A stretch of DNA of 45,942 nt from Chara braunii (GCA_003427395.1 BFEA01000014.1:2394517-2440458), one strand, 5' to 3'. Shown: positions 1,160-29,222, numbered from the stretch's first letter. Notes: generated by a model not told the origin, from the letters alone. Numbers and translations are program-made.

Positions 1160-1160
1160 A

Positions 1161-1300
1161 GGGACGCTGGACCCATTTTCCAGCAGGTGACACTCCCCAC
1201 CAATAGATGGAGCGGCTGGTGAGAGGGCTACTTGGCGGGGTGGCTCCTATCCCGGCCTCCCAAGCAGTCTCTGACTCTCTGTAAAATAAATAAGAAATAA
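1161..1300 (+). mobile_element. Short retroposon 3' end: double-pseudoknot motif, long hairpin, A-rich tail
   Basis: Motif at 1161-1213, hairpin at ~1222-1279, tail AAAATAAATAAGAAATAA. Confidence 0.7.
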
Positions 1301-1972
1301 CTGCGCGGGTGACTGCTGCACGGTTCCCAATTCGTAGGAAGGAATAACAGTAACAGGGCACTCAGTCTCCGGTTATGGGTCGAGGGAGGGCAGTTAGAAA
1401 CTGCAAAAACAGAAGTTACAGAATTGTTACAGCTTTGTGCACTTCTAGCCATTGGAAGTTCGGAAGTGGCAAAATCAGGTCGCCACTCGTGTTGTTTATT
1501 TTTATTTTTTTTTCCCGCGCCTGCGACTTTTTTTTTTCTTTTCCTGCGCCTGCGGCATTTTTTTTTTTCCGCGCCTGCGGCATTTTTTTATTGTTTTTTT
1601 CTCTGCGCCTGTGGCGTTCTTTCTTTTTTCGCGCCCGCGTTTTGTTTTTTTTTTTGCGCGCGGCCATTGCTAGGCCACGGCCGAGGTGTCTACGCCGCAC
1701 CAGTGGCTGGGCCATGGCCGAGATGTCTTGGCCACGCCCATGGCTGGGCCACGGCCGAGATGCCTAGGTCACACCCCTGGGGAAACGACCAGTACCGGTA
1801 CCGGTACCTCCCATTTTTCGCCAATTGTTGAACTGGCAGGACCGGTCCCGCTACCGGTACCTGTTTTTTTTGCAGTTTCGAGTTAACTTTCGAACAGCAC
1901 TGCGTTCAGATTGCAGTCCGCTGTTATTCCCCACTGCGAATTTGGAACTCTGCGGCGGTCACAGCCGCAGTT
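1299..1972. mobile_element. Non-autonomous TIR/foldback element (MITE-like)
   Basis: 1299-1350 is an imperfect reverse complement of 1921-1972. AACTGCAAAAA (~1399) mirrors TTTTTGCAGTT (~1867). The interior has T-rich GCGCC repeats and GGCCACGGCCGAG / ACCGGT repeats. No clear TSD. Confidence 0.55.
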
Positions 1973-3019
1973 TTCTCTTTCTTTTCTTTTGGCCAAGAGT
2001 CTATGTTTTCTCAGTTTGGTACTTGTACGTTGTGCCTTTTCCCTTGCTGCTTTGTGCTGTTTGTCTACCCACCCACCCACCCACCCACCCACCTCCCTGG
2101 TGTCCTTCACCCTATTTGCCGTGTAACCGTGTGTTCTCCAATGCCTTGCTGCCTCCCCGCCTTTTGCCTCTTTACATTTTGCCTCTTCTTTTTTTTTTCT
2201 TTTTTTTTTTTAACAAAACCCGGGTTTACTAAAGGCACTGGTAAGCCTTTGCATGACATTCCCTGGACATATCTGACTGCTGCCACTGTACCTCGGAGTC
2301 CCCTGTTTGTTGGTTGCTTTTTATATAATATTATACCCTGATCACACACACTGTGACACACACACTCACTCACTCACTGCTTTTTTCTCAGTAAGACAAT
2401 CTGGCTATCTGGGTAGGGCAAGGACTCAGGCATGAAGGCTGTAAAACCGAACACCGTTCTCCTTGACATTGTCTGTGAGTGTGCAGTTGCTGTTGTCCCC
2501 AATGTCCTCACAGTTGCTGCGGGTTGTCGGAGGGTATACTGACAGCCTGAGGGAGTTTCGAACACGGTTGATGTTTTTCTGCAGCTGCCGCTGTTTGTCG
2601 AAGGGAACCTGTTCGAACGTCGAATTTGGGCAGCAACTTGTCTGGGGGCAGCCAGAAAAGAGGTCTGCCCGGTAGAGGGGCAGATCCTGTGGGCCCAGTT
2701 GTCGACAGCCAGCCCCTGGGCACATAGTTGGGCACCACAGGACAGGGACATATGCAAAAGAGAGGCCTGTCATATGCCTACTGGTAGTATCCAGCCTCTT
2801 CAACAAACTGCCCTTCAAAAAAAAAGAAAAAGAAAAAGAAAACGAGAGGGCCATCACACAATACCCCTCTCTTTTAGGGGTATCTGACAAAATTATAGGG
2901 TATTTCCAAAACGAAGGTGGACATTGCGGCAGACATTGGTTTTGGAAATACCAGGCCTTTCATCATTGGGCATCTCACAAAGTTTTGTCATTCTTGTGAT
3001 TGCATGAGGATTCAAGTTT

Positions 3020-3108
3020 TTGTTTTTTTTCGTTTGTGTGAGTGTGTGTGTGAAGGCTCCATCTAATGGTCGGGAGCTGCACCTGCTGAGAACTGGGCCT
3101 AGTGTCCC
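3020..3108 (-). mobile_element. Short retroposon 3' end with a degenerate double-pseudoknot motif
   Basis: Motif at 3056-3108 (minus) followed by an AC/A-rich tail. Confidence 0.6.
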
Positions 3109-3241
3109 AATATTACTTCTTCTTCTTTTTTTTTTTTTCTTTTTTTTTTTCAAAAGTCCCCTTCGGGTTACTAGGGGTGCCATGGATCTGTAATTTGAAG
3201 AGGTTACCGTAGGAAACTCGTGTTGTCCAAACCATGTTGTT

Positions 3242-3646
3242 GTTGTTGTGTTTTTTTTTTTTTTTTTTTTTTTTTGAATAGCCTCTCGAAAACCCACTAT
3301 CCCGGCGGTGGTGAGAGAACCGCCAGGTTTGAGGGTTTGCCCGTTGGGCTGCTCCATCTATTGGTGGGGAGCTACACCTGCTGAGAACCGGGCCCAGCGT
3401 CCCTTAAGCCACCAGTACCTCGCTCAGCTATTGAATCCGAGCCTCCCAGCACGCTGCGCGCCAAGTCCTGCCGAACCGCCGTCGCAATTTTCTTTTTCGT
3501 TTTGCCTGCGGCCTCCAGCCAATGCGGTCCGGCAGGCCGAAGCCCAAATGGCGCGGCGCGTATACGGGAAGTGCCGCGGCCGATAGCTGGGCCAGGTAGT
3601 GGTGGTTTAAGAAACAGACATGTGGCACTGAGGGTACCTTATGTTC
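3242..3646 (-). mobile_element. Short 5'-truncated retroposon with poly(A) and a candidate 12-bp TSD, interrupted by a MITE
   Basis: Motif at 3351-3403, hairpin, poly(T) at 3251-3275 on plus. AACCATGTTGTT occurs at 3230-3241 and 3647-3658. Confidence 0.65.
3408..3606. mobile_element. MITE flanked by TTAA
   Basis: The left end GCCACCAGTACCTCGCTCAGCTAT and right end ATAGCTGGGCCAGGTAGTGGTGGT are ~24-bp imperfect inverted repeats. TTAA lies at 3404-3407 and 3607-3610. A solo copy of the TIR plus TTAA is at ~29346-29372. Confidence 0.7.
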
Positions 3647-3899
3647 AACCATGTTGTTTGTATCGACCGGCGCTGATCCCACTTCAGTCACCCCTCGTCT
3701 GTGACGATATCATTTGTGTCATTGCTCTTAAAGCCTGCCTCACCAACTTCAAGCTTGTCCCTCCCACCTTCTTAGTCCAGTTGCAGTTGCAGTTGCTTGT
3801 CTCTTGTATTCTGTGCCGAAGCCATTTTGTGCCTTTACTCTTGACCCCTTCCCTACAGTCATCAAGCTTATTAGTCATTTTGTAGCTCCTCTGTTCTGT

Positions 3900-5426
3900 G
3901 GGTCGTTGCTGGCCGCATCCTGTCGCTGATCTGTTGCGACCAGGAGGCTGCCAATCCCAGATAGGCCTGCACCGGAACGAGTGGAAGAGATCCTACGCCA
4001 ACCCCTTTTTGGGAACAGGGCAATTACGGACAGGCAAGGAAGAGTTTTCGCTAGCTCGGACCCCCACTGGGCCTCATGGGTCAGGCAAGAACTTCTTAGA
4101 GTGGGGGATATATGGGACGAGGCAACCAAAGAATGGAAAACGGCCCAACTGCTACGACCCTGCCTACGTTACGCTCGCAAGCTGGCGGACGCCCTGGACC
4201 ATTTGATGTTTTGGATTCCCCTTGCATGGGTGGTGACCCTAAGAAAGGGCCCGTTACTACAAGATCAGGATTGGGTAGCAGTAAGGGTAGCGAACCCCCC
4301 TTTGCAAATTGGCACAATAGTGGAAGTTAGACCAGAAGGGGCCATGGTCAACCTTTTCAAAAGAAGAGGGGATGACACCCTGGTCCGCTACCACCCAGAC
4401 TCGGTCCAATGGCATGAGAAGACCAACCTCTACCGGATCCGGGTTGTGCAGAGCCATAAGGAAGAGAGGACTCAATGGCGTGCCTACCTACCAGAAGTAC
4501 CCCCGTCCGCTTTAGCCCTGGACCCTCTAGAATGGCAATGGGTTAGGGGACAGAATGGACAATCTGTGCACCTCTCTGAACTGTCTGTAAAAGCCACTTA
4601 TAGGATGATCAAACCCTGGGTCGACATCCGGGCAGGAATAGAAGAACGATGCCAGAAACACCTCGGCCTGCAGAGGGATCAAGTTAGAGGGCTGCAGTGG
4701 TTCAGAGGGGTGAAAGAGAGACCAGCAAAGAGGTCCTCTCTACAGTGGCAAATCTGCCACAGATGCCTCCCCACCAATGATTGGATTATAGATTGGACGA
4801 ATCTGGAGCAAAGGGGGGCCGCACTCCTATGGTGTAAATTCTCTAATGCAGGTTCCCGACCCAAAGAATATGCGAGACAATAGAATACATTTTCCTCCAA
4901 TGTCCGGGAGCTACCCTGCTGTGGCGTTGATGGGATCACATTTTGTCCCAACTGGGCACCAATGAGGAGTGGCCATGGAAATGGGAAGCTCTTCTGCTGG
5001 GACAGTGGAGCAGGCCACAAGCATCACGCTTCGCCAACAACCTCTTTACCATATCTACAAAGGCGATGATCTGGACCTTGTGGACAAGAAGGTGCACATT
5101 CGATCAAGAAGGGGCCAGAATGGAGGAAGGAGAAGTGGCGATTACAGTTACGAAGACAAAAATAAGAGCACAATGGCAAAGAACTCAGGGAAAAAATGGA
5201 AATTCTCCCACAGATATTAGACATTATCAAGGAAATCCACACCAGGTCCTTCTGCGCAGAATGGCGGGGGGGGGAAAGGAGGGGAAGGATGGCTCAGGTA
5301 GAATGGCCTGGGGAAAAGGGAGATGAGGGGGGAGGCAGCGACTTCGCCAAGGACTACAAGCTCAGATTCCACGGCTGGCTGCAAGTTGACCCCAGCATTC
5401 CAATGAAAAGCCCTGCGGATTTCTGA
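3900..5426 (+). mobile_element. LINE ORF2 C-terminal fragment (LINE-2), 5'-truncated and frameshifted
   Basis: ORF 3981-4883 (RQPLFGN, GDIWD, LDPLEWQW, LQWQICHRCLPTNDW) continues into 4943-5326 and 5196-5426. It is colinear with the 9285-10790 region of LINE-3. Confidence 0.88.
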
Positions 5427-5504
5427 GACATGTTCCCTTTGGCAGCCACAACCATAGTAGAGAGGCAATGGCTTGGACAGAAGTAGAAAAAGGGGGTGGC
5501 TTAG

Positions 5505-5666
5505 AATTATTATTATTATTATTATTTTATTTTATTTTATTTTTTTCTCCAAACAGCCCGGGTAACTGCTAGAGATGCTGATGTGATCAGGCAACACTAG
5601 CAGTTCCTGGGTGGCTCCATCTATTGGTGGGGAGCAGCACCTGCTGGAAATCGGGTCCAGCGTCCC
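5505..5666 (-). mobile_element. Retroposon 3' end: double-pseudoknot motif, hairpin, A/(AAT)n tail
   Basis: Motif at 5614-5666, hairpin at ~5557-5611, tail at 5505-5546. Confidence 0.7.
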
Positions 5667-6806
5667 TGTAAAACATATTTGAGTTCCTCAGTTGGAAGTC
5701 ACCATGCGAGCATGTGATATCAGAGTAATCGTAAGAGATCATAGTGTACATGTGGATGATGTGAAGTAGGCTATAACCCGTGTGAGCATGAAGTTAGTTG
5801 TAAGAGCTTATCATGTTCTGGGCGGTGGGCTGTCGCCCTGTCCGCATCTAGTAGATCCTGGTGAGTGTTTATGCTATTGACATGCACAGTTTACTAGTCA
5901 TTTTGATGCTATGTGTTCTACTGTTGCCTAGTGTACTGCAGCTGTTGTGAAATGGGCTATACTTTGTCCAGCACTCCAGTTGTGCCTATGTGTAGTTGCT
6001 GTGACAGCTGTTTCCCCTGTCATTTGTCCTGTATGGGGTCAGTTGTAAGAGCTTGTCAGATTCTGAGAGGTGGGCTATCATCATGCCCCCATCTAGTTGG
6101 TCCTCATGAATATTTATGCAATTAGAATGCACTTAGAATGCACAGTATGCTGGTCATTTTAGTGCAGTGTATTCTACTATTCTCCTTGTACTTGGTGATG
6201 CTGGGAACCAATCGAGCCATAGTTAGATGCAATTCTGATCTGTTTGTCTTTGCTGCTGCTCCGAACACTGAGGTTGTTGTTGTTGCACTCCGTCTTTCAT
6301 TGATACCCGACCCCCGGCCGGCCACTGAGATTGTAAGAGAGTGGGGCGAGAGGGGAGGGGGGGGGGGGGGGGGGGGGGGGGACGGAGGGGTTGTGAAGTC
6401 AGAGGTCGGCCAGTTGGGGAAAGCTGGGAGATTTCTGAGAAGAAACTATGACTGTGAGATGTCAAAGGGGTCGGGTACGAGGACGAAGTCGGTTGGTTGA
6501 AAGGGGATGACGAAATGGATTCTTGACGAGACCTGGGGAGGAAGGAATTAGTGTGCAACACGAACTAGCTTCATTGGGATCTCCATATTTATTTCTTGAG
6601 CCCTTTCCTCCCTGAGATCTAGCCTTAGTGGATATGGATTGGTATGGTCAGGGTGATGGGTAATTCATAAGTTGCTGGATAATTAGTTTTTTCATTCACC
6701 TGGGTAGATACTGCTAGAGAGATAGGCTTATCTGGTGGCTCAATCGGGCTGAAGAGGCAGGTTTCTACTTTCACCTCACAATGTCCTGTTCTGAATAATC
6801 ATGTAA

Positions 6807-6902
6807 GGGACGCTGGACCCGTTTTCCAGCAGGTGTTGCTCCCCACCAATAGATGGAGCCAGCCCAGGGGGTGCTAGAGGTGTCTGCTCCTATCAGCACT
6901 CC
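6807..6902 (+). mobile_element. Retroposon 3' end with the double-pseudoknot motif, cut by an opposing poly(A)-tailed insertion
   Basis: Motif at 6807-6859, then a half hairpin resembling the one at 20410-20460, ending at the T-tract 6903-6917. Confidence 0.65.
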
Positions 6903-7156
6903 TTTTTTTTTTTTTTTATAGAAAGCCCTGGTTGTTGTAGAGACCGGACTCCGGACACACGGGGTTGCCGACACAGCTATTGGCTCTCCTGACACTCTCT
7001 TATTCACCGTAAGACCACCTCCTTACCCATCCTCTCGGCAATTCTCCTAGCGCACCCCTATCCCTACCATCCTACCTCAGTATTACTACTCAGGACTATC
7101 ACCATGGTATTTCAGAGGGCGACTTGGACCAGACAGTAGTTCTAGGCACCGGGGCT

Positions 7157-7590
7157 AGGCTGGACCAAGCGCGAAGCCTTGAGCCCCTCCCAGCCCCAGT
7201 TGAGGCACAGTCAAGCAAGCCACGTTACTCAGGTACATCGGGCGCCAGGCTCTAGTATTATGTCTGCTTCACCTACCAACCCCCATTCTGGCATGTGTAT
7301 ACTATATATATGTGTGTCGTATTCTGGCATGTTTCTCCTTTCTACAGATGTCAGATACTGAGGCTGGACAGGGCCAAGCGCGAAGCCTTGAGCCCCAGCC
7401 AGCCCCAGTCATGTGTGTACGTGCTATCTGTGTGTTATCCATGGTTCTCGATACCGAGGCCAGGCAAGGACAAGCGCGAAGCCTTGAAAACCCCGGCCTA
7501 CCCCCAGTCATGTATGTGTATATGCCACGGTTCTAGATACTGAGGCTGGACAGGGACAAGCGCGAAGCCTTGATCCCAGCCAACCCCAGC
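7157..7590 (+). repeat. Four degenerate repeats with core GAGGCTGGACAGGGxCAAGCGCGAAGCCTTGAxCCCAGCCAxCCCCAG
   Basis: Copies at ~7157, ~7360, ~7456 and ~7542. The spacers are themselves related (CATGTGTxT..TTCTxGATAC). Confidence 0.8.
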
Positions 7591-7982
7591 AGTAGTGCGG
7601 ACCCCCACCAAGCCCCCATTGAGTTCTGTATATATATGTGTAGGGTTGTATTGTCATATGAATGGTGGGCCGGTCTGTGCAAGAAACCGCCCCAAAGTCT
7701 CTAGCCAGACTCGAACCCACACCCTGTGTTGTGTAACTACAATGCCCTATCTTATGTGCTGTGTTCTGAATTGATGCCAATGTATGGAATGCCAGAACAG
7801 GGGAGAATCTCAGAACAATCAATAGCTACGTCAAGCAACCCACGCATAGTCAAGACCCAGCATACAACAACCAGGACTACCCCTTGGGTGGTGCGCAGGC
7901 AGTGTCTGTAATAGTACCATGCGTCAGCCCAAGGGGATGTGTGTCCAGCCGTGCGTCACTCTAACGCCCTGCCGGTGTCCAT

Positions 7983-8069
7983 GCGCAAGGCTGCGGAGTT
8001 TTGAACCCGCAACCTTATACCACAGTGCGCATTTCCAACAGGTGCTCTAACCACTGAGCTACATCGTGC
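7983..8069 (-). pseudogene. tRNA-derived sequence (SINE head or tRNA pseudogene)
   Basis: Minus strand has A-box TAGCTCAGTGGTTAGAGCA and B-box-like GGGTTCAAAACTCC. The acceptor and anticodon stems are imperfect. Confidence 0.55.
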
Positions 8070-9284
8070 AAGGGAATGTTCAAAAAAAAAAANNNNNNNN
8101 NNNNNNNNNNNNNNNNNNNNNNNNNNNNNNNNNNNNNNNNNNNNNNNNNNNNNNNNNNNNNNNNNNNNNNNNNNNNNNNNNNNNNNNNNNNNNNNNNNNN
8201 NNNNNNNNNNNNNNNNNNNNNNNNNNNNNNNNNNNNNNGGAACAAAAGCTCCAATCTATTCGTGGGGAGCATCACGTGCTGAGAACTGGGCTCAGCGTCC
8301 CTTTGAAGTACAACTGAGAATATGTAACACATTTGAAATTCCAGGGCCATTGCCCGGCTTTGGCTAGGAAAACAATCAGTCAATTACCTATGAGAAACAA
8401 CTGCAGTTCTCAGAAAACTGCCTAGGATCTACCCAATCACAATCCAAACCTGGAAGCAGAAGATCCTAACTAAAACCTCCTACTGTTTACACCTCCCTTT
8501 CAACAAGCGAAAAATGTGAAGTCCAATACCAGACTGTCGAATCAGAAGCTTTTTTTTTTTTTGTTGAGCTGCTGGGAGGAAAAACCTCTTCGCCTTATAC
8601 CTGGCGCCAAATTTCTGCAGCTGACGGCCTAGTCTTCCCCCTGCAGGCCTGATGAACCGCTCCACCCTGTGCCCGGCTGTTTTTCCGCTGCAGGAGCCTC
8701 TCTTTTTGACAGTGTGGCACATAGGGGGAAAGTTGAATGGTGACTGGGAAATGCCTGCCAGCATTGATTGCTCCAGGGTCCAGAGGATTAACTGAGCAGG
8801 TGTGACTGTGACCTGGACCGTGGTGGTCCCCTTCTCCCTCTCCACCCCTGTGCCCGGTCAGGGTTCCGGGAAGGGCCACTGGGGGGCACCAGTGACCTTC
8901 CGTCTCCCTGCCCCGTTCCCCAAAGAACCTACTGTCCTCCACCTACTGACCGGCGGCGAACTTGAAGTGTTGCAGAATGAAGCAGAACTACTAAAATGGG
9001 TGGCCCAGATTGAAATGCACGAATACTGAGGCTGGAAGACGAGACTTGACACAATCAGACAGACTGCAACACAGAAAAGCAAAAAGGTTGAAAAAACTGA
9101 CAAAACAGACTTTTTACAGAGTGAACATAGTCTGAACAAACAAACACAGCATGTCCAAAACCCGAGCGACAAGGCGAACAAAAAACAAAAAGGTTGAAAA
9201 ACCGGACAAAACCAGACTCTTGTATTTTTGGAATGTATGTGCAGCATAGTGCCCCACCTATCATTGAAGATAAAGAGTTATCCA

Positions 9285-12200
9285 TCAATCTTGATTCAGT
9301 CTTACTTCCAAGGACAGTGAGTGGGGCGGGAATGGGTCCGGGAAGTCCTCTGCTGGCCTCAGGGGGACACTGCAGTCTATGGTCATCCAGTCTTTGAACT
9401 GTAAGCGATAGTCTCGTGGCACCGTTCTCTTTCCTTGTCCTCCCTCCCTTCCCTCGTCTTCGTTCCCTTCCCCTGACCATCGTACCGCTGCTATCCACCC
9501 CTCTCGATCCCCTCCCAGCCATTCTGTGGAGAATTGTGTTATTCTGTCCTTGATGTCTTTTGCTCTGTTGAGGGTGTCCAGGGTGCATTTGGCGGTCTTC
9601 CATCTATGTTCCAGTTCCATTTGTATGTGTTGCTTGAACTGTTCTACCCTCTCCTCCCCCTCGACTCGGACGTGGTCAAACACCAAAGCGCACCGTTGCC
9701 ACCATAGGACCCATAGGACCGTCCTTCTGCCCAAGTGGAACATGTTCCAGGCAAAAGTGTCTCCTTGGAGAGGCGGGTAGTGGCCTAAGGGAATGGCACG
9801 CCAATCCCACGGCCACTGATGTCCAGGAACAATTTGCTGCCACACTCGATCCCACCATCTCCAGGTTAGAACTGCTATCGGGCATTGTAAAAAGATATGT
9901 TCTATTGTTTCCGTCCTCAATCTCGTTGGGAAGCCCGAGCAACAGCGTGAACACCAAGGGAGGGCCCGGCCCTGCTGTTCCAAACTCGAATGATCTATCA
10001 ACCAGTCATTTGTTGGCAGGCAGCGGTGCAGTATTTGCCACTGTAGGGACGTAATCTTTGTCGGTCTACTCTTAGTGTCACTGAACCACCAAATTGGTGT
10101 AAGGAGCTGGCGATCCACGTTGAGATGCCGCTGCCATCTGTCTATCACGACTGCTTTCAGGCACCGTTTGGTTCTGATCTTTCTGTAGGTTGTTTTCACA
10201 GAAAGGTCAGCAAATGCTGTGGAGGAGGATTGCCCCGATTGGTGTCGCCCTTCGTGGGTCCAGATCCACTCCAGTGGGTCTATGGGTAGGTCTTGTATGG
10301 CCATCTCTGGCATGAACGCCCTTTGGTTCTCCCCATCCCCAATGATCCTAATTCGGTATAGGGTCACCTTTGATACCCATAGGAGGGGGTTCCGACTTCC
10401 AACTAATGGTCCACCTGTTTTCACCTGATACCACTCTATCAGTGCATCGTCCGATCGGACCTAGTGGACCAAACCCACTTGATCTGTCACCCCATCCTTG
10501 GACACCCAGTCCCCTTCCTGTAACTGTGGCCCCTTGCGCAGGATGAGCCACCACCCCACCGGGAGGGCTTCCGTGATCTCTTCTACTGCTGATTCTATGT
10601 TATGACAATATCTCAGGCTCTCTTTCATCGCCATCGGGCTCTTCCAGTCGTTCTCCTCGGCGTCCCAAAGGTCTCTCACGCGTGTTACACCATTCTTCAC
10701 CCATCCTTTCCATGGGGATTCAGAACTGCAATAGATCTGACTCAGACCATTGGTGATCCAGCAGTTGCCAAAGAGGGGTTGTCTTGCCACCTCCTCCCAC
10801 CTGGTTGGGGGTGGGCGGGACGGGGGGGGAAGTCTCCTCCATGTTTTTAGCAGACGGGGCTAAAAGTCGTCCCCCCGCCTCTCCCCCCCCCGGGGGCGTC
10901 GAGGTACTCTCCAATATCGATCATCCAACCACTGGAGCGGATGGACCGTTGGGGGGGCCTCCGGGGCTAAGCGGGCAATCTGTTGAAGGGCGAGAGGTCT
11001 CCACACCAGCGGGTTTGCGAAAATCAACCTCACGATCCATTGAAGGCTGAGGGTCTGTGTTTGGGTAAGGGGGTCTAATATTCCGAGCCCCCCTTTTGTC
11101 TTGGGTTGGGTAACCGAGTCCCACGCGACCCGGCTGATGGCGTGGGGATTTTCGCTATCACCTCGCCATAGGTAAGCTGCCGCTTTCTTCTTCAGGGATT
11201 TCAGAGCCCCATCACTCAATGGCCAGAGGACGGCCTTGTACCATAGAGATGTCAAGATCACATTATTAATTACCAGTGCCCGTCCGAAGAGTGACGTGTT
11301 CCTATGGTTCCATTGGGAGAGTTTAGCAAGGGTCGGGGCTGAGATCCATTCGTCATTCTCCGGAGTCCTTCCTTTTGCAGACATCTTGACCCCTAAAACC
11401 CGGATCGGGGTCTCCGGAGGGACCCATGTGACCTGTTGTCATTCTGGCGGGCGGCCTCCTTGATGATGGAGCCACCAACCGAGTGTTTTTTGTCCCCAGT
11501 TTACATCCATGTCAGACAGGGTGCAGAATCGGTCCATTAGCCGTTGTATTTCCTCTATGTTATTTTGTGTAGCATCGACCATGATTGTCAAGTCGTCTGC
11601 AAACAGGGAGCACACCGGGATTGCCTCCTCTGGGATGCTTGCTATGCGAATTCTCGCCAAATCTTTGATGTGCCGAAGGTTGGCTGCTAGTGCTTCCATT
11701 ATGATGATAAAGAGGAAGGGGGCGATGGGTCACCCTGTCTCACCGAGCGTTGCAATTTTATTTATGGAGCCAGGGACCCATTGATTTGCACCCTTGTGGT
11801 TGCGTTCTGATGTAAGATGTTTATCCACCATCGAAAGTTTGTTCCAAAGTTCAGTCTTTCTAGACATCTATCTAAGAAAAGTCAGTCTACATGATCATAT
11901 GCTTTCTCGAAGTCAATGAAGATGAAGGCTGCATTGCTCTTGGATTGCTGCGCCAGGCTGATCATTTCATTGACCAGCAGTATGTTTTCCTGAATATTTC
12001 TGTGGCGGATGAATCCCGTCTGGGCCGGATGGATAAAATCCTCAATTACTTCGATTATTCTGTTTGCCAATGTTTTGGACAGCATCTTGTATACTACCGT
12101 CAACAGGGTGATAGGCTGGTAGTCGCGCATATTCATCTTGTCCCCTTTTTTGTGGAGCAGAGAGAACACCCCTTGCCCTGCCAGTTCCCCCAAATCCCCT

Positions 12201-13822
12201 GACTCCCAGACTGCTGCATAGAAGCGCATCAAGTCACTACTGAGGAGGGGCCACATGGTTTCCCAAAACTCTTTCGGGAACCCATCCAGACCAGGGTTTT
12301 TCTCTTCGTCCATTTGCATAAGCGCTGTCCAAATTTCGTCTTTAGTGATGTGCCGGTCCAACCTGTCCTTTTGTGACGGAGAGAGGAGGTTTTCCATTGG
12401 GCTCAGAAATTCATCCATCGCAGCAAGACGGTCGGCCTCGAGACGGGGAGGGACGTGAGAGGAGAAAAGGTCCTTATAGAAGGATTTGGCAATCCTTATG
12501 CAATGGGCTGTGGTTGTGGCCAGTTCGTCAGTCCTGGGGTCTAGAAAGGCTTCAATGGTGGTGCGGTGTGCTCTTAGTGACGCCATACTGAAAAATTGTG
12601 AGTCCATGGTGCCTTCGGTAGTCCATTGTTTTAATTTACCTCGTATTCTGATTCCTTGCCATCTGTGTAATGCGAGCTGTAGAAGTTGGTCCTTCAATCC
12701 TTGAATCGTCAGAGTGTGGTCGCTCGAGTTGTCCTGGTTTACCAGGTTATGAAGTTGTCGATGAATGTCCAGTTCATGTGCATTTTGTCTGCTCGCTACA
12801 AGTTTTGAATATTCCTTACATTTTTTGGCTAGGAAAAACAGTCCGTTGGTAAACCATCTCACCTCAGAATCGAAGGTCTGTCTTTGGTCTCGCCAATATC
12901 CCCATACATCGCGGATATATGCCAGAAAGGATTCGTCCTTGAACAAGGACGTGTTAAGTTTATAATACCCAGACCCCTGGTCTGGTCGTTTTCGAAAGGA
13001 GAATATGGCTCCGCAGGCACAGTGGTCCAGATCGGGGTAGGGGCTCAGTGGTAAGATCGCGGTACGTTGCAGGGCATTTTGTATCTCCTCTGATATTAGG
13101 ATCAAGTCAATACGTGATTTTGAATGTCTTACCGGCTCATTCGTGCGAAAACATGTGTAGGACCTCTCCGTTGGGTGCAGATACCGATGTGCATCTACCA
13201 GCCCCAGTGTGCCACAGAGGTCTGTTATTAGTTTTTCGTCCTCCTCTACATAGTTCGAGCAGGGGGATTGGGTGTTCCATCGATCCATCCATCTATCTGG
13301 GGCCGCATTGAAGTCGCCTGCGATAATAAGCGGGATGCCTTGAGGTGCCAGGGTTTTGAGGTGCGTGTAAAAGAGGTCCTTGTCGACCGTGGTGTTAGGG
13401 GCGTAGATGCATAGAATGCATATTAGCTCCAGTTCCAGCATTCCAAGGACCGACACCCACCTTCCTTGTTCCTCGTCCACCACCCAGTTAACCACCTCGA
13501 GACGGGATTCGGGTGGTACCCAGATCGCCACCCCCGATGAGCCAGGAGTTACTGCATGCGCCCTGAAGGCCTGGTGTGGCCAAACTATCTTATGGGCCCG
13601 GTGGTGCTTCGGCTTGTCCATTAGGTGCGTTTCCTGGATACAGATGACGTCCGGCCATGTCCTACCCCCCACCCCTTTCAGTTGATCCCAAATTGCTTGC
13701 TTTTTAGAAGGGTTAAAGGAGGCCAGCCCGTTCACATTTAGGGTTCTCAGATCGAGATCCGCGCTTCGGAGGCAGCTCTTCCACTGGGGGTTCCTGCCAT
13801 ACAGGATGTCAATGTCGTCCAT
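9285..13822 (-). pseudogene. LINE-3 ORF2 (APE endonuclease, reverse transcriptase, zinc knuckle), frameshifted
   Basis: TLNVNGL, ICIQETH, IYAPN, AGDFNA, SRIDLIL, DH, PGLDG, YQPITLL..YKMLSK, QTGFI, IDFEKAYDHVD, LFADD (11439-11699), GGLGILDP (10860-11384), CSRC..EHIFLQC (9285-10424). Confidence 0.95.
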
Positions 13823-13848
13823 TGTTTCCTTTCAATTCTTTTCCTGGA

Positions 13849-16800
13849 TCAGACTCTTAACCATGGGCGCTCGGACCAGTTAACTATGCACAACAACCCA
13901 TTCATGAGGATCCTTGCCAAGCAAGTGTGGAGATCCTCCTCAGCCCAGAAGGAATTGGCCTTTACCTGTTGAAGAGGAAGCTCCATCAGGGCACCGTGGT
14001 TGAACCATTTCAGGTTTGAATCCTTATCCTCCTCGAAGAGGACATACAGGTCCGTGGTGGCCACCCTCATCAACCCCTCAAACTGCGGAAGGATTGCTTG
14101 GATACCGACAGGGTAGTGGCGGCTCAAGAAAGGTTCCGCCTTTTTTCCTAAAGTCGCCATCCCTCAGGCCGGGGAGGGACCAAATGTTATAGAAGTTCCA
14201 TCCCCGTATAGTAAACCCCCCTTGTACCGGGGAGAGACCCACCTCCATTTTGTCCCCCTCCTGCCTTAGTGGGATAACCACCACCCCGTCCTTCCGCTGT
14301 AGGGGCTTTTCATATTGCCCTCCGGCCACCAGATGTCTGAGCTTTTTGTGTCTTGGCGGACCAGGGTTGTGGCTGACCGGGTTCATTGTACGGCCACCCT
14401 CTGGTGGATCTGAAGAGGGCCGGTGTGGATCAGGGGGGCGGAATTGCAAAGCCGAGAGGTGTCGAATCCGCTGGAAAATCTCTGGCCAGGATATGTGTGG
14501 AGGAGGGCCCTCTTGAAGGGCTCTTCGGAGGGTGGGGCTATTGTCCAACATAGAAAAAAGTTGGACATATGTGCAGTCCCAGAATTCTGGGGAGGCCTCC
14601 GGGTGTTGGGCTTGAAAGCCTGCTAGCAGCCACTCCGCAATTTTTGTTAATTTTTGCTCAATGTCCATGTCTGCCGGGGGTGCTCCCGTGTCACCCTGTT
14701 GGTCCACATCCATCATCACAACCTCCGGGGGAGGGGGGAGGGTGGAGGGGTCCTCAATTTCCATTGGGTGGGGGCCAAAGGCTCCCTCGAGATGGTCCAC
14801 CCTATTGGGGTCCCCCTCAGAGTCGGCGTCCGGTTGCTTCTCCTGGATTTTTCATGTTCCTCGATTGCCTCGAGTTCCCTCATCCCCTGCTAACATGCTT
14901 GCCCCTTCCGAACCCCCAGATGGGGGGAGCTGCTCATGCGGGCACTTTGCGAATTGCTGCTCCCTGGCTAAGTCCCCTGTTGCGGTGAGCTGCTCTAGCC
15001 AGCTTTTGTTGTTTTGCAGCTCCCTGGCTGGTTCTGTTGGGGTCCGAAAGTGTGCTGCAGAGATCTAGAACAGACGTTGCAGTGCATCCCCCCATCGAAT
15101 GTGTTCAGGGGGGCCATGTTTCAGAATTGTTTGGACTTGCAAACTACTCCCTAAGGCTTCCTTCAGCTGCATGTGTGCCTGTGTCCAGAAGTCTGCCGAA
15201 ACCTCTGAATGCAGGGACCGCAAGCCTGTCATGATCCAATCTGAGATTTGTGTAATGGAGACATTCGGGTCCTGTACCTGTTCCAGGCTCACCGGGTTAA
15301 TGCGTCCTTGCATCAGTGTTGTCAATGCCCCTTCGTAAGGATCCTTCGGTGCCTTATCTGGGGGTGGATCGTTCCCCACGATCTCTTGAAGTCCCATACC
15401 CTTTTCCTCCTGCCGAAGAATCAGCTGCCCTTCCTGGACCCGGTCACCCGCAGCCTCCTGCTCGCCCCCCCTCAGACCCCCGTCTTCTATGTCAAGCAAG
15501 GAAAATCTGTTGCTTTGTTCCTTTTGTTCCTTTTATTCCTTTTGTTCGCTCGTCCTGTGCCCTGTCCGGTTCCCCCCGCTGTCCTGGTTCCTTTTCTGCG
15601 GTAGCTTGGAAGGAGTTGGGTTTTCCGGGTGCTTGACGTAGTCTGCCGGGTCCGGGCCCAACTTTCCTGCCTCGAGCTTTCCCCTTTCCTTCCTTTCGTC
15701 AGGAGGGGGACCGTCTGACTTACGTAAGTGAATTTCCACTGTTTTCGGGGGTATCCATGTGGCCGGGGGTTTTGTCTGCAGGGCGGGCTCCCCCGCCTTG
15801 TCCCACACCCAGCCAATAATATTCCCTTTTTCATCCGTCTTATCCGCGTAGACCCATCCCTCGTGCCCCGGGTCCACGGTACGCCAGTGGGTGCTCCGGA
15901 AGGGATCTTGAATCAGACGGCCCGTGGCTCTAACTTGGTTGACAGGGTGGTGACGGCAGGTAGGGTCTGTGTACAAATGGCCGTAGGCCTGGCATTTAAA
16001 ACACCATGGTCGAAGCTTGTGTGCAGTGTGAATTTTGACATCCTTCTCTCCCACCCTGAAGGAGATTATGTCGTCAATGGAGAAGGGCTGGCTTTCCGGG
16101 AGGTCGATCGCCAGCATAAGATAGTCGTCTCGTTTGGCAACGTGCGGGGGGAGGGGGTCTATGAAGTCGATAACGTCATATTTTGCTCCAAAGTCCTGCA
16201 CGAAAGAAACCTGTATTTCGATTGGAATGTGGCGAAATTCCACCCAAAAGTGGTCCGCCATCATTCTGTCCCTCCTCACCTCCGGCCGTTGCTGCTTTGG
16301 TGGCGCCCATGGGTAGATTCTCACCTCAGATCTCTCGCATCTTATTGATCGCCAGTTGTCCATTGCCCGTTTATCGGTGTCGTGTCTGCATATGACGGTC
16401 ACTGTTGACGCTGACACGGGTTGGAGCAGAAAGAGGTCGTGGGCTTCTTCCAGACTGCCTTTAAGGGAGGCTAACCGCTTCCTGATCCAACCGATTTTGT
16501 TGTTCGTTGATTTAAAAGCGGCCATGAAACACCCAGTTGTTTGCGTGTTTCAGATACAGATCATTCCTTTCAGTTACTTTAGCGGCGGGCAGCGATTTGA
16601 TTAGAGATGATTTGCCCCCGTGATTGACCACTTTTGGTTCGGAGGGGGTCAGAAGGTGGGATAGGAAGAATGCCGCAACAGATGACAGGTTATCCATGGG
16701 AATCTTCCATACCCGCTCCTCGCCCTCTTTTTCTTGTCTGTGGATTGAGAACGACTGGCCCGCGTGCGGGCACCGAAGGCGGGCGGCCCAAGAGGGGGCA

Positions 16801-17069
16801 GGGAGGGTCGGGGATTCTAGTGGGGGGCCTGGGGGCTGTATGGTGCTCTGATCCTTATTCTGCTGGGACGCCCCAGGAGGCAGTGTATTACTATTCCTTC
16901 CATTCTGCTGGTTAGCCTGTGCATCACGCCGATTCCCCTGGTTGTTTGCGGCCAATCGTCTTTCTGCATGTTGTCTTATGGCCCCTCGGTACAGAAGAGT
17001 GGAGTCCAACTTCTTCTGCACCCTTTGGTACCGGCTCCCGGTGCGCCGTGCCCCCATCATTCCTCCCAA
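13849..17069 (-). pseudogene. LINE-3 ORF1 (Gag-like zinc-knuckle protein), fragmented
   Basis: Same-strand ORF pieces directly upstream of ORF2. WVEFRHIP and CFKCQAYGH..C in 15533-16525 are typical of plant L1/Tx1 ORF1. Confidence 0.75.
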
Positions 17070-17949
17070 TATGCCTTAAGTTGTGTGTCTCCCTTCCCGG
17101 ACCGATCTGTATATCAGACTGCCCGCTCAAATCTGTTTGTCAGAATGCCCAGAGCTGTGTGTCAGAGTGCCCTTGTCATGCAAGCCTCGTCTGAGCGGGT
17201 GGTCCCCCTGTCCTGGTTTGCAATCTTAGCTGTCTGTCGACCTCCGAACTTTTCTTTCAGCGAGCAATGTGCCCCCCTGTCCTGATCTTCATTCGGCTGT
17301 CGAGCCCCCCCCTTATTTTGCTGTCGAGCACCTTCTCACTTCCGACCCTGACTGTCGAGCACCTTCTCCTCTTCTTCTAAACCAAGTGATATGCCCCCCG
17401 GTCCTAGTTTCTCCCTTTTGTGTCCCGTTCTCCTTGTTCGTACTATGCCCAAAAACCTGTTCCACGTGGAACCAAATGATATGCCCCCCCTTCCGAGATT
17501 CTCCCTCTTGTCTCCCGTTCCCCTTGTTCGTTCCAGTCCAAAACCTGCTCCACGTGAAAAAAAAAAAAAAAAAAAAAAAACCCTGAGATGCTATTGCAGT
17601 GGTTGATTGATGCCACGTGGCGTTCTGATACTTTTGCTGTGTTTGATTATGCGTGGGATGACGCTAGCGTCCTGTTTTGTACTTCCGGGTGTGATGAAGG
17701 ACACTTACTCCCTTTGTAATCTCTGGCTGAGGACACTTCCCCTCCTCCACCGGGGGGAAAAATCCCTCCCGGGGCCCCAAGAGGAGTAGTGAGGCGTCCG
17801 TCGTCGCTTTGCCCTTCCTCTGTGGCTATGGGCACCTGGCTCCCTTCCCTCGCTCGCTGTTGCTTTACTTCAGTCACGTCTCGCCTGCCGTCGTGTTTCG
17901 CTTCCCCTTCGTCCCTCGCTCGAGTGCTCTTCCCTCCAAGATCCTGGCG

Positions 17950-18982
17950 GCTTCCCTTCTTGCGCCAGGCTCCTGTCCGCTCGGAGATTTAACCCCGTTA
18001 CCTTCCCCGGTTACTTTCCCCACCATGCCTGTCTCCTCTTGCCACCTCGTTCTCCATGCTCCCCTCCCTCCGTCGTGTCTCCCCGGGCGGCTATGGCAGT
18101 TTGACCGGGTAACCCTACGTTCCCCTTCCCTCGTGGCAGAAGCACCGTCCGCGCTCGCAGCGGTGCGAACCCGTCGCAGTGTCGGTGCGAGGCGGTCGTC
18201 CAATCCGCGTTGTCAGACGAAAACAGTGTGGCTGCTTCTCTTCTTGCGCCCGGGCTCCTGTCCGCTCGGAGTTTTAGCCCCGTTACTTTCCCCACCGTGA
18301 TTTGTCTCCACTCTGTCTTGCCCTCCTCTCGCCGGACTCTCCTTGGTCTTACCTCTTGTTCCCTTTCCCTGCGCCGCCGTGCTTCACTTCCTCTTCGTTC
18401 CTTGGTGTTCCTCACTCGTTTTGTTCATCCCTCCGTCGGTTTGGCATCTTCTCGTGTATACTACTGTGCTCCACTGCTCCCCGGAGAGACAGTCCGTCCT
18501 CGTGACCTCCCGCCGAATCCTCCTTGGTCAGTCGCCGCCTTATTTTCCGGCAGCCTTTCATCATCTAACTTTATGTGATCTGTCAAACCATCTAGTTGTG
18601 CTATCGCTCCTCCTCCTTGTCGTCCGTTCGTGTTCGTAGTCTGGTCCCTCCCGGCGCCGGAGGATGACTCCATGCACGCTACTTTCTGATAGCCGCACGT
18701 GTGATTCCCTCTTATCCCGACCACCCACCTCCAGTCTACTTGCGAGGGTCAACCCATCGCGCTGCGGCCATGCGCCCAGCGATGTCCTCGCCTTCATCTG
18801 GTACTTTCCCTGCCTGTCTCCTCTCGCCTCCTCGTTCTCGATGTTCCCCTCCCTCCGTCGTGTCTCCCCGGGCGGCTATGGCCGTTTGACCGGGTAACCC
18901 GACGTTTCCCCTTCCCTCGTGGCAGAAGCGCAATCCGCGCTCGTAGCGCTGCGAACCCGTCGCAGTGTCGGCGCGAGGCGGC
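17950..18982. repeat. GC-rich region with internal direct repeats
   Basis: ~18045-18195 is repeated at ~18830-18982, and ~17955-18025 at ~18238-18297. Confidence 0.75.
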
Positions 18983-19612
18983 TAGCCGAATTCGGGTGAC
19001 ATCAATGACCAGGTCGAGACTGTGGTGCCCATCCCACCTCCATTGTACAACTACAATATTAACTGCTCATTTGCTTATTAAACCCTTCTACGACTCAACC
19101 TTCCACGTCCTTTAGTCTCGTGTTTAAATCTTCACCGTCCTACCCTACGAACCTCAGAAGGGACTAAAGATCAGGTCTGCTTATCAACATTTCATTTATT
19201 TTTATTTGAGTTTTTTCTAAAACTAATCAATATTATTCTCTCAATCTTCTTTTGTATATATTGTCTCATCCTCTGGCTACACTATGTACAGTACGGGCCC
19301 TACGGGGGAACATCAACCAAACCTGGAACTGTCCCCGGCCCACGGGCCCACGGGGTATGTTGGCACCACAGCAGTGGTGTCAGTGCAAGGCTTGTATCGG
19401 CCCCTCGTCATGATGATGCAGGGTGATCAGGCATTGCTGACGGGGGAAAGCGGCAATGCTAGTGCCGAGCATCTTTGGCCAGTCGCTCGCACCTCCCTCT
19501 ACCCCCCTCCAACCCCACATTAGCGGTGTCTAATGGCCAATATCATTGCTGCATAGCAACCAACAATATTGGCCAAGGTCCTGCCAATGCTGGCATGGAG
19601 GGCCGACTGGTT

Positions 19613-19723
19613 ATCTCTACCTGGTAGAACACCAAGCTTGCCCAGGCACGTACGTGAGGCCACTGGGGATTGAACCCACGACCTCCTGAATGCAACTTCT
19701 GTGCCTTACCAACTGAGCTAACA
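19613..19723 (-). mobile_element. tRNA-derived SINE head
   Basis: A-box TAGCTCAGTTGG (19709-19720) and B-box GGTTCAATCCC (~19666-19676). The tRNA-unrelated tail CCTGGGCAAGCTTGGTG is shared with the 20680 copy. Confidence 0.75.
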
Positions 19724-20356
19724 GTTCTGAATCATGGCTCTTAGGGCATACCCACACTGGGCCTTGCTCCACTACACTCTCTTTTTGTGTTTTGTTTTGT
19801 TTTTTCTTTTCTTTTCTTTTTGGCCTTGCTCCATGCATGAAGATGAACCTGCGACAATGGACTCCTACTACTGCAGGGAATGGACCGCTCTGATTTCATA
19901 TAGCACAGACAGGGAACACAGCATTTAGGGCTCTCCTCTGGTACAGGGGCCGAGAGAGGGCCCCTAGATCAGGTGGGAAGGTGGATGGTGACAACAATGG
20001 ACAACCTGGGACAACGGACTACTACTACTGCAGGGAATGGACCGCTCTGATATAATATAGCACAGACAGGGAACAGAGCAATGGGGGGCTATGAGCGAGC
20101 AAGATTAGCATAAAAGTAGTTAGTCTGTTGTCGATAACAGCATTATGCTCCTCCGACAGCAGGAGACAGTGGCGATAGCTGTATGAGAATAGGGGGCTGC
20201 TGCGATAGGGCTGGGTTAATAGATAAGGGGCGCTCCTAAAAAGGGATGGGTGACACTAGCAGCGCCATGGGATAGAGGAGCCCCGAGTTGAGATTGAATG
20301 GGCCACAGCCCCGGGGAACAACAAACAGCATTCTTTGTATTGCACGATGTATCAAA

Positions 20357-20492
20357 GGGACGCTGGACCCGGTTTCCAGCAGGTGCTGCTCCCCACCAAT
20401 AGATGGAGCCCCCCGACGGTGCTAGATGTGTCTGCTCTTACCAGCACACCTAGCATCCGATTGGGTTGTTCCTAAAAAAAAAAAAAAAAAAA
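20357..20492 (+). mobile_element. Retroposon 3' end: double-pseudoknot motif, hairpin, poly(A)
   Basis: Motif at 20357-20409, hairpin GGTGCTAG..CTAGCATC, poly(A) at 20474-20492. Confidence 0.72.
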
Positions 20493-20679
20493 GATGATAA
20501 TATAGTCCTTCGGGACAGAGCGCAAGGATGACATGCATAAATCGAGAAGATGATAATATAAGCGTTGGGCACTGGGCCGGTGTTTTGAAAGGAAAAAAAA
20601 AAAACATGCACGAAGGTTCACTTTTTTTTTTTTTTTTTTTTTTTTTCAAAGAACATAAAAAACCACATTTGTGATCAGC

Positions 20680-20795
20680 GGCGGCCTAGCTCAGTTGGTA
20701 AGGCACGCAAGTGGCATTCAGGAGGTCTTGGGTTCAATCCCCATTGGCCTCACGCACCTTCCTGGGCAAGCTTGGTGCTCGCCACCTAGAGATAT
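20680..20795 (+). mobile_element. tRNA-derived SINE head
   Basis: A-box TAGCTCAGTTGG at 20687 and B-box GGTTCAATCCC at 20731. Homologous to 19613-19723. Confidence 0.78.
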
Positions 20796-21937
20796 GCCGT
20801 TGGGCCCCCCGAGTGGCATTGAGCAGAGACTGCTGATGTTCATAGGGGGAGGGGACTGGAGGGGAGGCACGGTGACTGGCCCATCGAAGAAGCTCGTTCC
20901 TGATGCAACCGGCTGACCCCTGGCCGGTATCACCCACCTGCTGTAGCAGGTATCGCACCTGCTGGTGGGTGCAGCTCCCGCATGTTCCCTCGTTGGAGGC
21001 TTGAGCACGGATGTGGCTGCTACGGGGTTCCCCGTAATTCTATAATGACAATAAAAAAGGCCTGAAAGGCCATCCTGTCCAGATTTGACAGGTAATTGAA
21101 TTGGTTGGGCTTAAAGAATTAGCCTTTTTTTTAAAAAACGAAAAAAAAAAAAAAAAAAAAACATTTGTCACGAGGCACGAAGATTCAGTCGTTTTGCTCA
21201 TTTCGACAGTAGTGGAGCGAGGCCCTGTCGTTTTGCACATGCACGAAGATTCACTGTCGTTTTGCACATTTGGACAGTGGACAGAAGTGGAGCGAGGCCC
21301 ACTATCTCAAATGTATCTGAATGCATTTGAGGGCAGACCAATATGTATCTGACCGCAATTTCCTCCAGAAAAATTCATTCAAAAGACCAAGTGTGAGCAT
21401 TGCCCATACAGTACCGTACAGCCACATGGGCTGGGTTTTCTTCATTCTTTGGAGGGGGGGGGGGGGCATTAAATTGCTATTTATTTTCAATGGGACCCAT
21501 CATTGCCCAGGGCAATAACATGACGTCCCACCTGACGTATGAGCAGGAACCAGCTGAGTCTTCAACCTGAAACAATAGGCAGAGATCCAGCCTCTACAGC
21601 TCATCAATCAACCGTGGGCATCAATGGGCCTCACTCCACTACTCACCACATGCACAAAGGACAAAAAATATGGCTGTGTATCCGCCCATGTTCTAGTGGA
21701 AGATTCATTCTCATTTTGCACATTTGACGAGTAGTGGAGCAAGGCCCAATACGTATCCCCCAACCCAATAGGAGGCAGGCACCTTTTGCACTGCAACCCT
21801 ATGGGGACTCTCTTTCCAGATAAGGGTGAGGCAGGTATCTCACAAACAGCTTACGATGCTGCTCGATTCAGATTGGCGAGGAGGTGCAGGTGCTACAAAC
21901 AGGGTGCATGCTTTCCAAATTAGGAAGCAGGCATCTC

Positions 21938-22018
21938 TTTTTTTTTTTTTTTTTTTTTTTTTTTGCTCCAATCTATTCGTGGGGAGCTGCACGTGCTGGG
22001 AACCAGGCCCGGCATCCG
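21938..22018 (-). mobile_element. Retroposon 3' end (CGTG/CACG motif variant) directly followed by poly(A)
   Basis: Motif at 21965-22018 abuts poly(T) at 21938-21964. Same variant as the LINE-3 3' end. Confidence 0.7.
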
Positions 22019-22879: not shown

Positions 22880-22950
22880 CCAGCGGTGGGGATAGAACCC
22901 ACAGCCTCCTGAACGCCAGTTGCGTGCCTAACCACTTGAGCTAGGATGCT
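22880..22950 (-). mobile_element. tRNA-derived SINE head
   Basis: Minus strand CCTAGCTCAAGTGGTTAGGCACGCAACTGGCGTTCAGGAGGCTGTGGGTTCTATCCCCA is related to the other two heads. Confidence 0.68.
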
Positions 22951-23259
22951 GGATGGAACCCAGATTCTTTTATCGCAGGATGAAAAAAAAAAAAAAAAAA
23001 AAACTGAAAAACGAATAGCAAGCTACTGAGGGCTGTACCACCCGAGACGTGGCCAGGAAAAAGGGCATTTCAAGCTCTAAACTACTAGCAGTGTATCTAC
23101 CCATGTTCTACCAGAAGATTCATGCTCTTTTTCCACATTTGGTCAGTAGTGGAGCAAGGCCCTGGATCTCCACAACTCTCCAGGCAAAGGTAAGTACGCT
23201 TTTTCTGCTTTTTTTTCCCAAAAGTCAATACGTACGTTTTTTCTTTTCTTTTCTTTGGT

Positions 23260-29200: not shown

Positions 29201-29222
29201 TTCAAAAAAAAAAAAAAAAAAA
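23260..29222 (+). mobile_element. L1/Tx1-like LINE (LINE-4): ORF1 3' part, ORF2 with internal RT deletion, 3' UTR, poly(A)
   Basis: Acidic ORF1 pieces at 23402-25023. EN motifs SWNIRGL, GLQETK, IYAP, LGD, SRLDSIL, SDH (25007-25800). RT N-half DGLP, RNYRPI, QGAFVKGR, DAEKAYD. GGLGLLDP. CVRC..EHLWLLC. Stop at 28718, AATAAA at 29185, poly(A) at 29204-29222. Confidence 0.93.

Follow-up and report, generated by a model that had tools for sequence, protein, structure and literature searches.

A conserved 53-base module at the 3' ends of divergent L1-type LINEs of Chara braunii, with a hairpin and a pseudoknot as its most likely fold: a candidate reverse transcriptase recognition tail

L1-type long interspersed elements (LINEs) are usually thought to choose their template by poly(A) alone. 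A stretch of 45,942 nucleotides from Chara braunii (GCA_003427395.1, BFEA01000014.1:2394517-2440458; the window, in what follows) raises the question of why a 53-base RNA module recurs there near the A-rich tails of LINEs and short retroposons, what it folds into and what it could be for. An earlier note, written from the sequence alone, had described this module as two back-to-back H-type pseudoknots, selected and shared across families. Our comparisons support a module that is under selection and spans LINE families, and its fold is most likely a hairpin plus a pseudoknot. As its position, its sharing and its conservation form the classical signature of such tails, we consider it fairly probable that the module is a stringent-type recognition tail for reverse transcriptase, used together with poly(A).

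The module is made of two units. Unit 1 has GGG at its 5' end, followed by the hairpin GCTGGA/TCCAGC with CCC in the loop, and unit 2 holds the complementary pairs GGTG/CACC and GCTCC/GGAGC. Eight full copies had been listed, and re-reading the window found motif and coordinates correct for every one (Table 1). A covariance model trained on six module copies recovers all eight, with E values from 1e-13 to 1e-24 where chance expects none, and adds two copies of unit 1 alone that had not been listed (32280 and 45448). Likewise, a pattern of the 22-23-nt core has six exact matches in the window vs 0 expected (100 shuffles), and a 19-mer with up to 3 mismatches has six vs 0 in shuffles. As had been noted, six of the eight copies point toward an A-rich tail, 0 to ~77 nt away in the sense orientation; in the 21965 copy the tail, A27, follows immediately (21938-21964). 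The 6807 copy is indeed cut by another insertion, 43 nt past the module end. The 3056 copy is a very short insertion that starts no more than 17 nt from the poly(A) tract of another element, and around the 1161 insertion no target-site duplication of at least 7 nt was found. Retroposons are nested in one another's poly(A) tails at 3109-3250(-), where a short poly(A)-ended element without a module lies between the 3351 and 3056 copies.

Table 1. Module copies, isolated units, tail hairpins and host LINE pieces (window positions unless a locus is named)
Position	Strand	Feature	Score or basis	Context
1161-1213	+	Full copy, unit 1 + unit 2	79.5 bits	Antisense within a LINE ORF2 remnant; A-rich tail from ~70 nt 3'
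3056-3108	-	Full copy, decayed	72.3 bits	Mismatches in hairpin 1 and at pair 29-38
3351-3403	-	Full copy	83.2 bits	Then GGCGGT/ACCGCC-type hairpin, then A25 (T25 on + strand, 3251-3275)
5551-5613	-	Third hairpin (HP3), CTAG type	z -3.1	3' of the 5614 copy
5614-5666	-	Full copy	84.9 bits	
6807-6859	+	Full copy	85.1 bits	3' hairpin interrupted by opposite-strand insertion (T15 at 6903-6917)
8248-8301	-	Full copy, CGTG/CACG subtype	64.9 bits	One additional T in loop 3
9288-13822	-	LINE-3 ORF2 pieces (endonuclease, reverse transcriptase, zf-RVT)	Pfam, homology	L1-type
20357-20409	+	Full copy, top score	85.3 bits	Reference for read mapping
20410-20492	+	HP3 (20410-20472), then A19 (20474-20492)	z -3.0	
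21965-22018	-	Full copy, CGTG/CACG subtype	49.7 bits	CGG...CCT, pair 1-14 unpaired
32280-32306	+	Unit 1 only (hairpin with CCC loop, GGG 5' of hairpin)	Model search	495 nt past LINE ORF2 remnant, ~105 nt ahead of A26
33642-33757	-	Three tandem unit 1, each AGG...CCT		LINE 3' end, 584 nt past ORF2 homology; A22 at 33558-33579
45448-45473	-	Unit 1 only, diverged	Model search	A-rich tract ~25 nt away
L004:47339-47367	-	Type B tail		
L007:6810-6838	+	Type B tail		
L008:31370-31396	+	Type B tail		
L009:17048-17074	-	Type B tail		
L011:18482-18510	+	Type B tail		
L012:28626-28654	+	Type B tail		
Others		Type B tails		

Searching a sample of ~430 kb, made up of the window, eight loci of GCA_003427395.1 reached via Chara LINE proteins and three small contigs, the model finds 20 full copies and nine copies of unit 1 alone. 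Among the 20 full copies the mean pairwise identity of the module reaches 85%, compared with 49% for the 53 nt on its 5' side, 50% for the 3' side and 45% for random 53-mers. The claim that the flanks are largely unrelated does not hold on the 3' side of many copies, which have a covarying hairpin, HP3, in common. One account of such a pattern would ascribe no function to the module and derive its copies recently from a single, highly active master by 5' truncation close to the module, the upstream flanks being nothing but insertion sites. Some copies are in fact tiny truncated insertions (1161, 3056), and several are 100% identical to one another over the module. Yet the stretch between module and poly(A), which is itself retroposed, divides into several unrelated types, at 50% mean identity, and a single truncated master is therefore excluded. 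Moreover, the module follows ORF2 remnants of LINEs that are only 32-48% identical, compensatory variants of it occur, and two other organisms hold it in reads without the flanks. An explanation without function is thus largely refuted and, in our estimate, extremely improbable. The tiny insertions at 1161 and 3056 are compatible with dedicated families of short interspersed elements (SINEs) and with 5'-truncated LINE copies alike.

That the window derives from Chara braunii is seen from one open reading frame (ORF) 81% identical to Chara braunii CBR_g8636, and its ORFs match the Pfam families Exo_endo_phos, RVT_1 and zf-RVT. The LINE remnants of the window have 24-45% mutual identity in the C-terminal part of ORF2. 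Four LINEs of the sample carry the module 3' of C-terminal ORF2 homology, on the same strand and with no A-run between, at distances of 155 to 1,113 nt (155 nt in L001, 427 nt in L002, also L008 and L009); their C-terminal ORF2 is 32-48% identical in amino acids to that of LINE-3, so that the earlier description of a selected, family-spanning module holds. Tail architecture tracks LINE lineage: the full module belongs to LINE-3-like elements, a second tail, type B, to the P0011/P0171 group, and unit 1 alone to LINE-5- and LINE-6-like elements.

The 8248 copy had been taken for the 3' end of LINE-3 beside an assembly gap. It is intact and does lie by the gap (8093-8238), with only 9 nt readable 3' of the module, and none of our conclusions hinges on continuity across that gap. 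The LINE-3 ORF2 homology ends 987 nt before the copy, and between the two, 250 nt upstream of the module, stands an A13 run (8550-8562, sense on the minus strand). This run could be the true LINE-3 tail, and the 8248 copy may be a separate short retroposon inserted beside it; against such an origin counts that all other LINEs with a full module have their closest similarity to LINE-3. The assignment to LINE-3 is therefore likely but, because of the intervening A13, not certain. The final 143 nt of the element that ends in the 21965 copy are 73% identical to the LINE-3 tail.

The module is far more abundant than its surroundings. In one Chara braunii DNA run 18,116 contigs align to it (reference 20200-20520), with a summed depth of ~1-3 million over the module vs 500-3,000 in the flank, and similarity stops abruptly at 20355-20357, the 5' edge of the module, and at 20409-20410. 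Two further organisms carry the module without the flank, and in one of them coverage is confined to 20343-20419. The break at the 5' edge would also be accounted for by an element that acts through host factors on RNA stability, either stalling an exonuclease in the manner of an exonuclease-resistant RNA (xrRNA) or protecting the tail, whereby stable 3' fragments accumulate and get retroposed, and the many copies that start at the module would be accounted for. The two window insertions that start no more than ~17 nt from the module (1161, 3056) agree with it, and a host factor would fit the use of one module by LINE lineages whose proteins differ greatly. Sharp 5' edges are, however, equally expected if unrelated families have only the module in common, and module types follow LINE lineages, as expected of co-evolution with the proteins of the elements. 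Nor do RNA 5' ends pile up at the module edge, a weak point since reads mostly fitted only partly. We regard a decay-blocking element as unlikely.

The module is present in RNA: raw oligo-dT reads cover it at a depth of ~3,000-3,900 vs 3-5 in the flank, with a 4:1 strand ratio toward the mate orientation expected of sense RNA. Oligo-dT capture enriches sense copies with an encoded A-tail, and the strand ratio is no proof of the module's own transcription, so that independent transcription is not established thereby. Most modules have a recurrent TGTA or TGTGA motif 2-8 nt on their 5' side (for example at 20346-20356, 6796-6806 and 5667-5678(-)), and it is met again in the loose-end consensus of the RNA reads and in the two other organisms; a protein site or a far-upstream element for polyadenylation would be conceivable roles for it. 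If the UGUA-like motif and the module served as far- and near-upstream elements, the whole would be a signal for cleavage and polyadenylation, as would suit the AAUAGA that lies 13 nt ahead of the A-tail in the 21965 copy. The distance to the tail varies, however, from 0 to ~80 nt with other hairpins in between, poly(A) signals need no covarying helices, and retroposed tails are copied from RNA, so that such a signal alone would leave the sharing with non-autonomous elements unexplained. We hold a 3'-end processing signal to be very unlikely.

What the module folds into was examined helix by helix on 28 distinct rows, with pairs numbered by module position. Over the whole structure 94.1% of cells are paired vs 24-53% with the 3' partners slid, and the covariation score lies above all 500 shuffles. 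In hairpin 1 (6-11 with 19-24) three pairs are changed on both sides with pairing kept: pair 11-19 is A-U in 21 rows and G-C in seven, and further changes occur at 6-24 and 10-20. The hairpin variants that had been reported are all present, namely GCTGAG/CTCAGC in the 8248 copy, GCTGGG/CTCAGC in the 3351 copy (one G-C swap plus one G-U) and TCTGGA/TCCAGA at 33686-33712. The GGTG/CACC helix changes from G-C to C-G at two adjacent pairs in separate lineages. At pair 26-41 the counts are GC 13, CG 2 and GU 1, the C-G form being the CGTG/CACG that was correctly attributed to the 8248 and 21965 copies; at pair 27-40, with type A and type B combined, they are GC 17, CG 8 and unpaired 0, and the C-G comes from type B. 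These substitutions support hairpin 1 and the crossing GGTG/CACC helix, and unit 2, in which GGTG/CACC is crossed with GCTCC/GGAGC, is probably an H-type pseudoknot. Its loops of 2, 1 and 7 nt would be sterically ordinary for that fold; the 2-nt loop 1 varies freely, as had been observed, and the A-rich loop 3 is conserved.

The same role could be served by a simpler fold, with two plain hairpins (GCTGGA/TCCAGC and GCTCC/GGAGC) and no pseudoknots, in which CCC, GGG, CACC and AAUAGA would be read directly by protein. The near-invariance of GGG/CCC and GCTCC/GGAGC could then reflect base-specific contacts, and nested minimum-energy and centroid folds already hold both hairpins. What is hard to explain without the crossing helix are the two-sided, pairing-kept changes at 26-41 and 27-40; AGG and CCT occurring together in all three units of the 33642-33757 array, as had been stated, also speaks against the simpler fold, as does the usual H-type pattern of a variable loop 1 and a conserved A-rich loop 3. 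Two plain hairpins therefore remain in our view a serious but lesser possibility.

For unit 1 a pseudoknot, in which the CCC loop of the 6-bp hairpin would pair with the 5' GGG, is plausible but unproven. A competing long-range helix, GGGA.GC/GC.UCCC, is 91% paired, but it was rejected as it has zero covariation and clashes with hairpin 1; that GGG is retained in units without unit 2 also argues against GGGA/UCCC. A scan with a generic hairpin descriptor for further GGG/CCC variants returned background only.

Several observations weigh against the crossed fold. The GGG/CCC helix has compensatory changes in one lineage only, the AGG/CCT of the single tandem array; pair 1-14 is GC in 21 rows, AU in three, all of that array, and unpaired in four, and pairs 2-13 and 3-12 are invariant save for one or two unpaired cells each. 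In ~32 copies GCTCC/GGAGC, 94.7% paired, has no two-sided change at all. Nested folding of the 53 nt is no stabler than that of shuffled sequences (z -0.5 to +0.45), which is to be expected where crossing pairs matter. The pairs themselves are uninformative on the folding strand, and G-U cells (eight) do not exceed A-C cells (12); decay after insertion is therefore the likely cause of much of the non-pairing. We count only about six independent covariation events, and many of the copies are pseudocopies undergoing decay. The helices GGG/CCC and GCTCC/GGAGC, both short of covariation support, are therefore putative. Of the two back-to-back pseudoknots claimed earlier, hairpin 1 and GGTG/CACC are borne out by covariation, whereas GGG/CCC covaries in one lineage and GCTCC/GGAGC in none.

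The units are also used separately. Unit 1 is found alone shortly before tails, and at one place in the window three of them form an array. Each of the three organisms has tandem joints of unit 1, and each also has contigs with direct repeats of unit 1 or of the whole module at spacers of 0-37 nt; tandem multiplication is therefore general, not peculiar to 33642-33757. HP3 stands 3' of many type A copies, has a conserved apical loop containing CTGCTC and shows compensatory changes at 12 of 18 pairs; besides the examples in Table 1 it occurs truncated at 6860-6902(+) and in L003, L004, L009 and others.

Type B tails consist, in order, of a CCGGT...ACCGG hairpin, a variant of unit 2, a 7-bp hairpin with an NTAA loop and poly(A). 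The unit 2 variant reads ACTG, a 2-nt loop, GCTCC, C, CAG, AATRGA plus a few bases and GGAGC, with CTG/CAG in place of GGTG/CACC, and the 7-bp hairpin covaries (CAGGACC, CAGAACC and CGGAACC forms). Their host LINEs form a different lineage, and the distance from ORF2 to tail is 315-1,037 nt; in L007 (315 nt) and L012 (349 nt) the two share a strand and no A-run intervenes. A further arrangement, type C, follows unit-1-only copies or stands alone and comprises a CTGGG-TAATGG-CCCAG-like hairpin, a CCGGGTTGA-N-TGTG-N-CCCGG-like hairpin, an AU-rich stretch and poly(A); it was seen in the window at 29110-29203(+), 32307-32410(+) and 33580-33641(-) and elsewhere at L010:40448-40560(+) and L006:15380-15466(+). 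The 8248 and 21965 modules are preceded, ~60 nt upstream, by a GCCGGG-NAATGG-CCC hairpin resembling type C.

Signals of this kind are known from other elements. L1-clade LINEs of maize and Chlamydomonas have conserved structured 3' tails followed by poly(A), and the ancestral green-plant L1 was proposed to need both tail sequence and poly(A) (Ohshima 2012, PMC3472496). The pairs described there, maize LINE1-1_ZM with ZmSINE2/3 and Chlamydomonas L1-1_CR with SINEX-3_CR, belong to the L1 clade as the Chara elements do and have a conserved 3' end of 45-80 nt, far less diverged than the rest (PMC3472496). These stringent tails show compensatory stem changes, are common to non-autonomous elements and are followed by poly(A), and the Chara arrangement looks like the proposed need for both tail sequence and poly(A); they are, however, single hairpins of one lineage each, whereas the Chara module has a crossing helix and its units are reused alone, in arrays and recombined (PMC3472496). 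It also spans LINEs of 32-48% ORF2 identity, unlike the maize and Chlamydomonas tails, which were compared by description, not by sequence. In eel UnaL2 and zebrafish ZfL2 a conserved 3' structure is likewise found, there a hairpin common to the LINE and its partner SINE, recognised by the ORF2 protein and essential for mobility (PMC1636434, PMC4176376); unlike the Chara elements these belong to the L2 clade and have a single hairpin, no pseudoknot and a short terminal repeat in place of poly(A).

A structural parallel concerns A-clade R2, in which a pseudoknot-hinge-stem-loop of the 3' untranslated region (UTR) is protein-bound and is necessary and sufficient for target-primed reverse transcription, as established by cryo-electron microscopy and by mutation with rescue (PMC11601368, PMC12222951). 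Like the Chara module it is a compact pseudoknot plus stem-loop (~65 nt in R2) at the 3' end of the RNA of a non-long terminal repeat element (PMC11601368, PMC12222951). R2 differs in its clade, its restriction-like endonuclease, its specificity for ribosomal DNA, its occurrence in animals and in needing no poly(A); the two RNAs have no sequence or Rfam similarity, and protein binding, proven for R2, is for the Chara module a supposition.

We propose, in line with these parallels, that the folded module would be bound by the ribonucleoprotein of a LINE, made with ORF2 protein and perhaps also ORF1 protein, and that target-primed reverse transcription would then begin on the adjoining poly(A), ahead of which a family-specific third hairpin is often present. 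Binding and a part in priming would be the putative functions of the module. Two further points tell against a recognition tail: spacing to the template end is fixed in R2, whereas the distance from module to poly(A) in Chara varies between 0 and ~80 nt, and the module is missing from three LINE relatives outside Chara, namely L005 (from a metagenome), L013 (a Logan contig) and L014 (26 kb of Closterium), small samples by which absence is not proven. A bolder form of the proposal takes the module for two genuine H-type pseudoknots in tandem, a portable 'copy me' tag that could be exchanged between L1 lineages with proteins of no more than ~30-45% identity, multiplied in arrays and be sufficient with poly(A) for retroposition; this we find doubtful, if worth stating.

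Consecutive small pseudoknots with an A-rich loop 3 also occur in the 3' UTRs of RNA viruses, in the upstream pseudoknot domain of tobamoviruses and in flavivirus xrRNAs, where they have roles in translation and replication or in exonuclease stalling. The Chara module has no Rfam match to them and no sequence relation. Rfam gave 0 matches at gathering score over the whole window and, around the module, chance level only (E 1.9-8.5, searched to E 10), so that no Rfam family was matched. A literature search on motif strings found no paper describing the module sequence, and pattern scans of viral and prokaryotic genome collections gave 0 matches. A metagenome pattern scan gave three contigs, all from the Chara sequencing project itself (BFBZ01, GCA_003427375.1) and so not independent. 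The module had been presented as undescribed; its kind of signal is already known (PMC3472496; for R2, PMC11601368, PMC12222951), and what appears undescribed is this form of module.

Other structured RNAs were considered and set aside. Self-cleaving ribozymes (hepatitis delta virus (HDV)-like, hammerhead, twister, pistol, hatchet) had no Rfam match, and in HDV-like ribozymes the double pseudoknot is nested, unlike the helix order a-b-a'-b'-c-d-c'-d' of the module. The triple helix of an expression and nuclear retention element (ENE) was dropped as there are no U-rich internal loops visible in the sequence and no model match, and a tRNA-like reading as ARAGORN called 0 tRNA genes over the window and no model matched; no tRNA cloverleaf is detectable in the module.

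At 22880-22960(-), on the strand of the 21965 module and ~860 nt upstream of it, a sequence resembling a tRNA has motifs like box A and box B and is preceded by a T21 run. It was not among ARAGORN calls; a long tRNA-derived SINE that ends in a LINE-3-type tail may have its head here, and no second copy of this head and of the body upstream of 21965 was found in the 430 kb. Comparable antisense tRNA-like pieces lie near 8000-8080 and 25200-25296. The metagenome LINE L005, 31% identical to LINE-3, has in its 3' UTR a tRNA T-arm-like GGTTCGATTCC hairpin (L005:5636-5652(+)), ~100 nt before poly(A). Apart from its retroposons the window has an Mlo gene, an uninterrupted ORF of 599 amino acids (39178-40977(+)) with a match to the Mlo family (E 7.5e-129) and AGG/AAG low-complexity repeats in its first third; assembly gaps at 38032-38783 and 42884-43565 are close to it.

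The case made by Ohshima (PMC3472496) rests on two isolated examples, and Chara, between chlorophyte algae and land plants, fills the gap. The widespread occurrence there of a structured tail followed by poly(A) makes the idea of an ancestral stringent L1 testable with an RNA of 53 nt. Reused alone, in arrays and recombined, the units clearly illustrate the evolution of retroposon tails through the shuffling of small RNA parts. If the pseudoknot is real and bound by protein, it would be the L1-clade parallel to the R2 3' pseudoknot that is now used for directing RNA-templated insertion. A tandem-pseudoknot tag, if true, would give the L1 clade its first template signal based on a pseudoknot and would lend direct support to an ancestral green-plant L1 that was a stringent recogniser.

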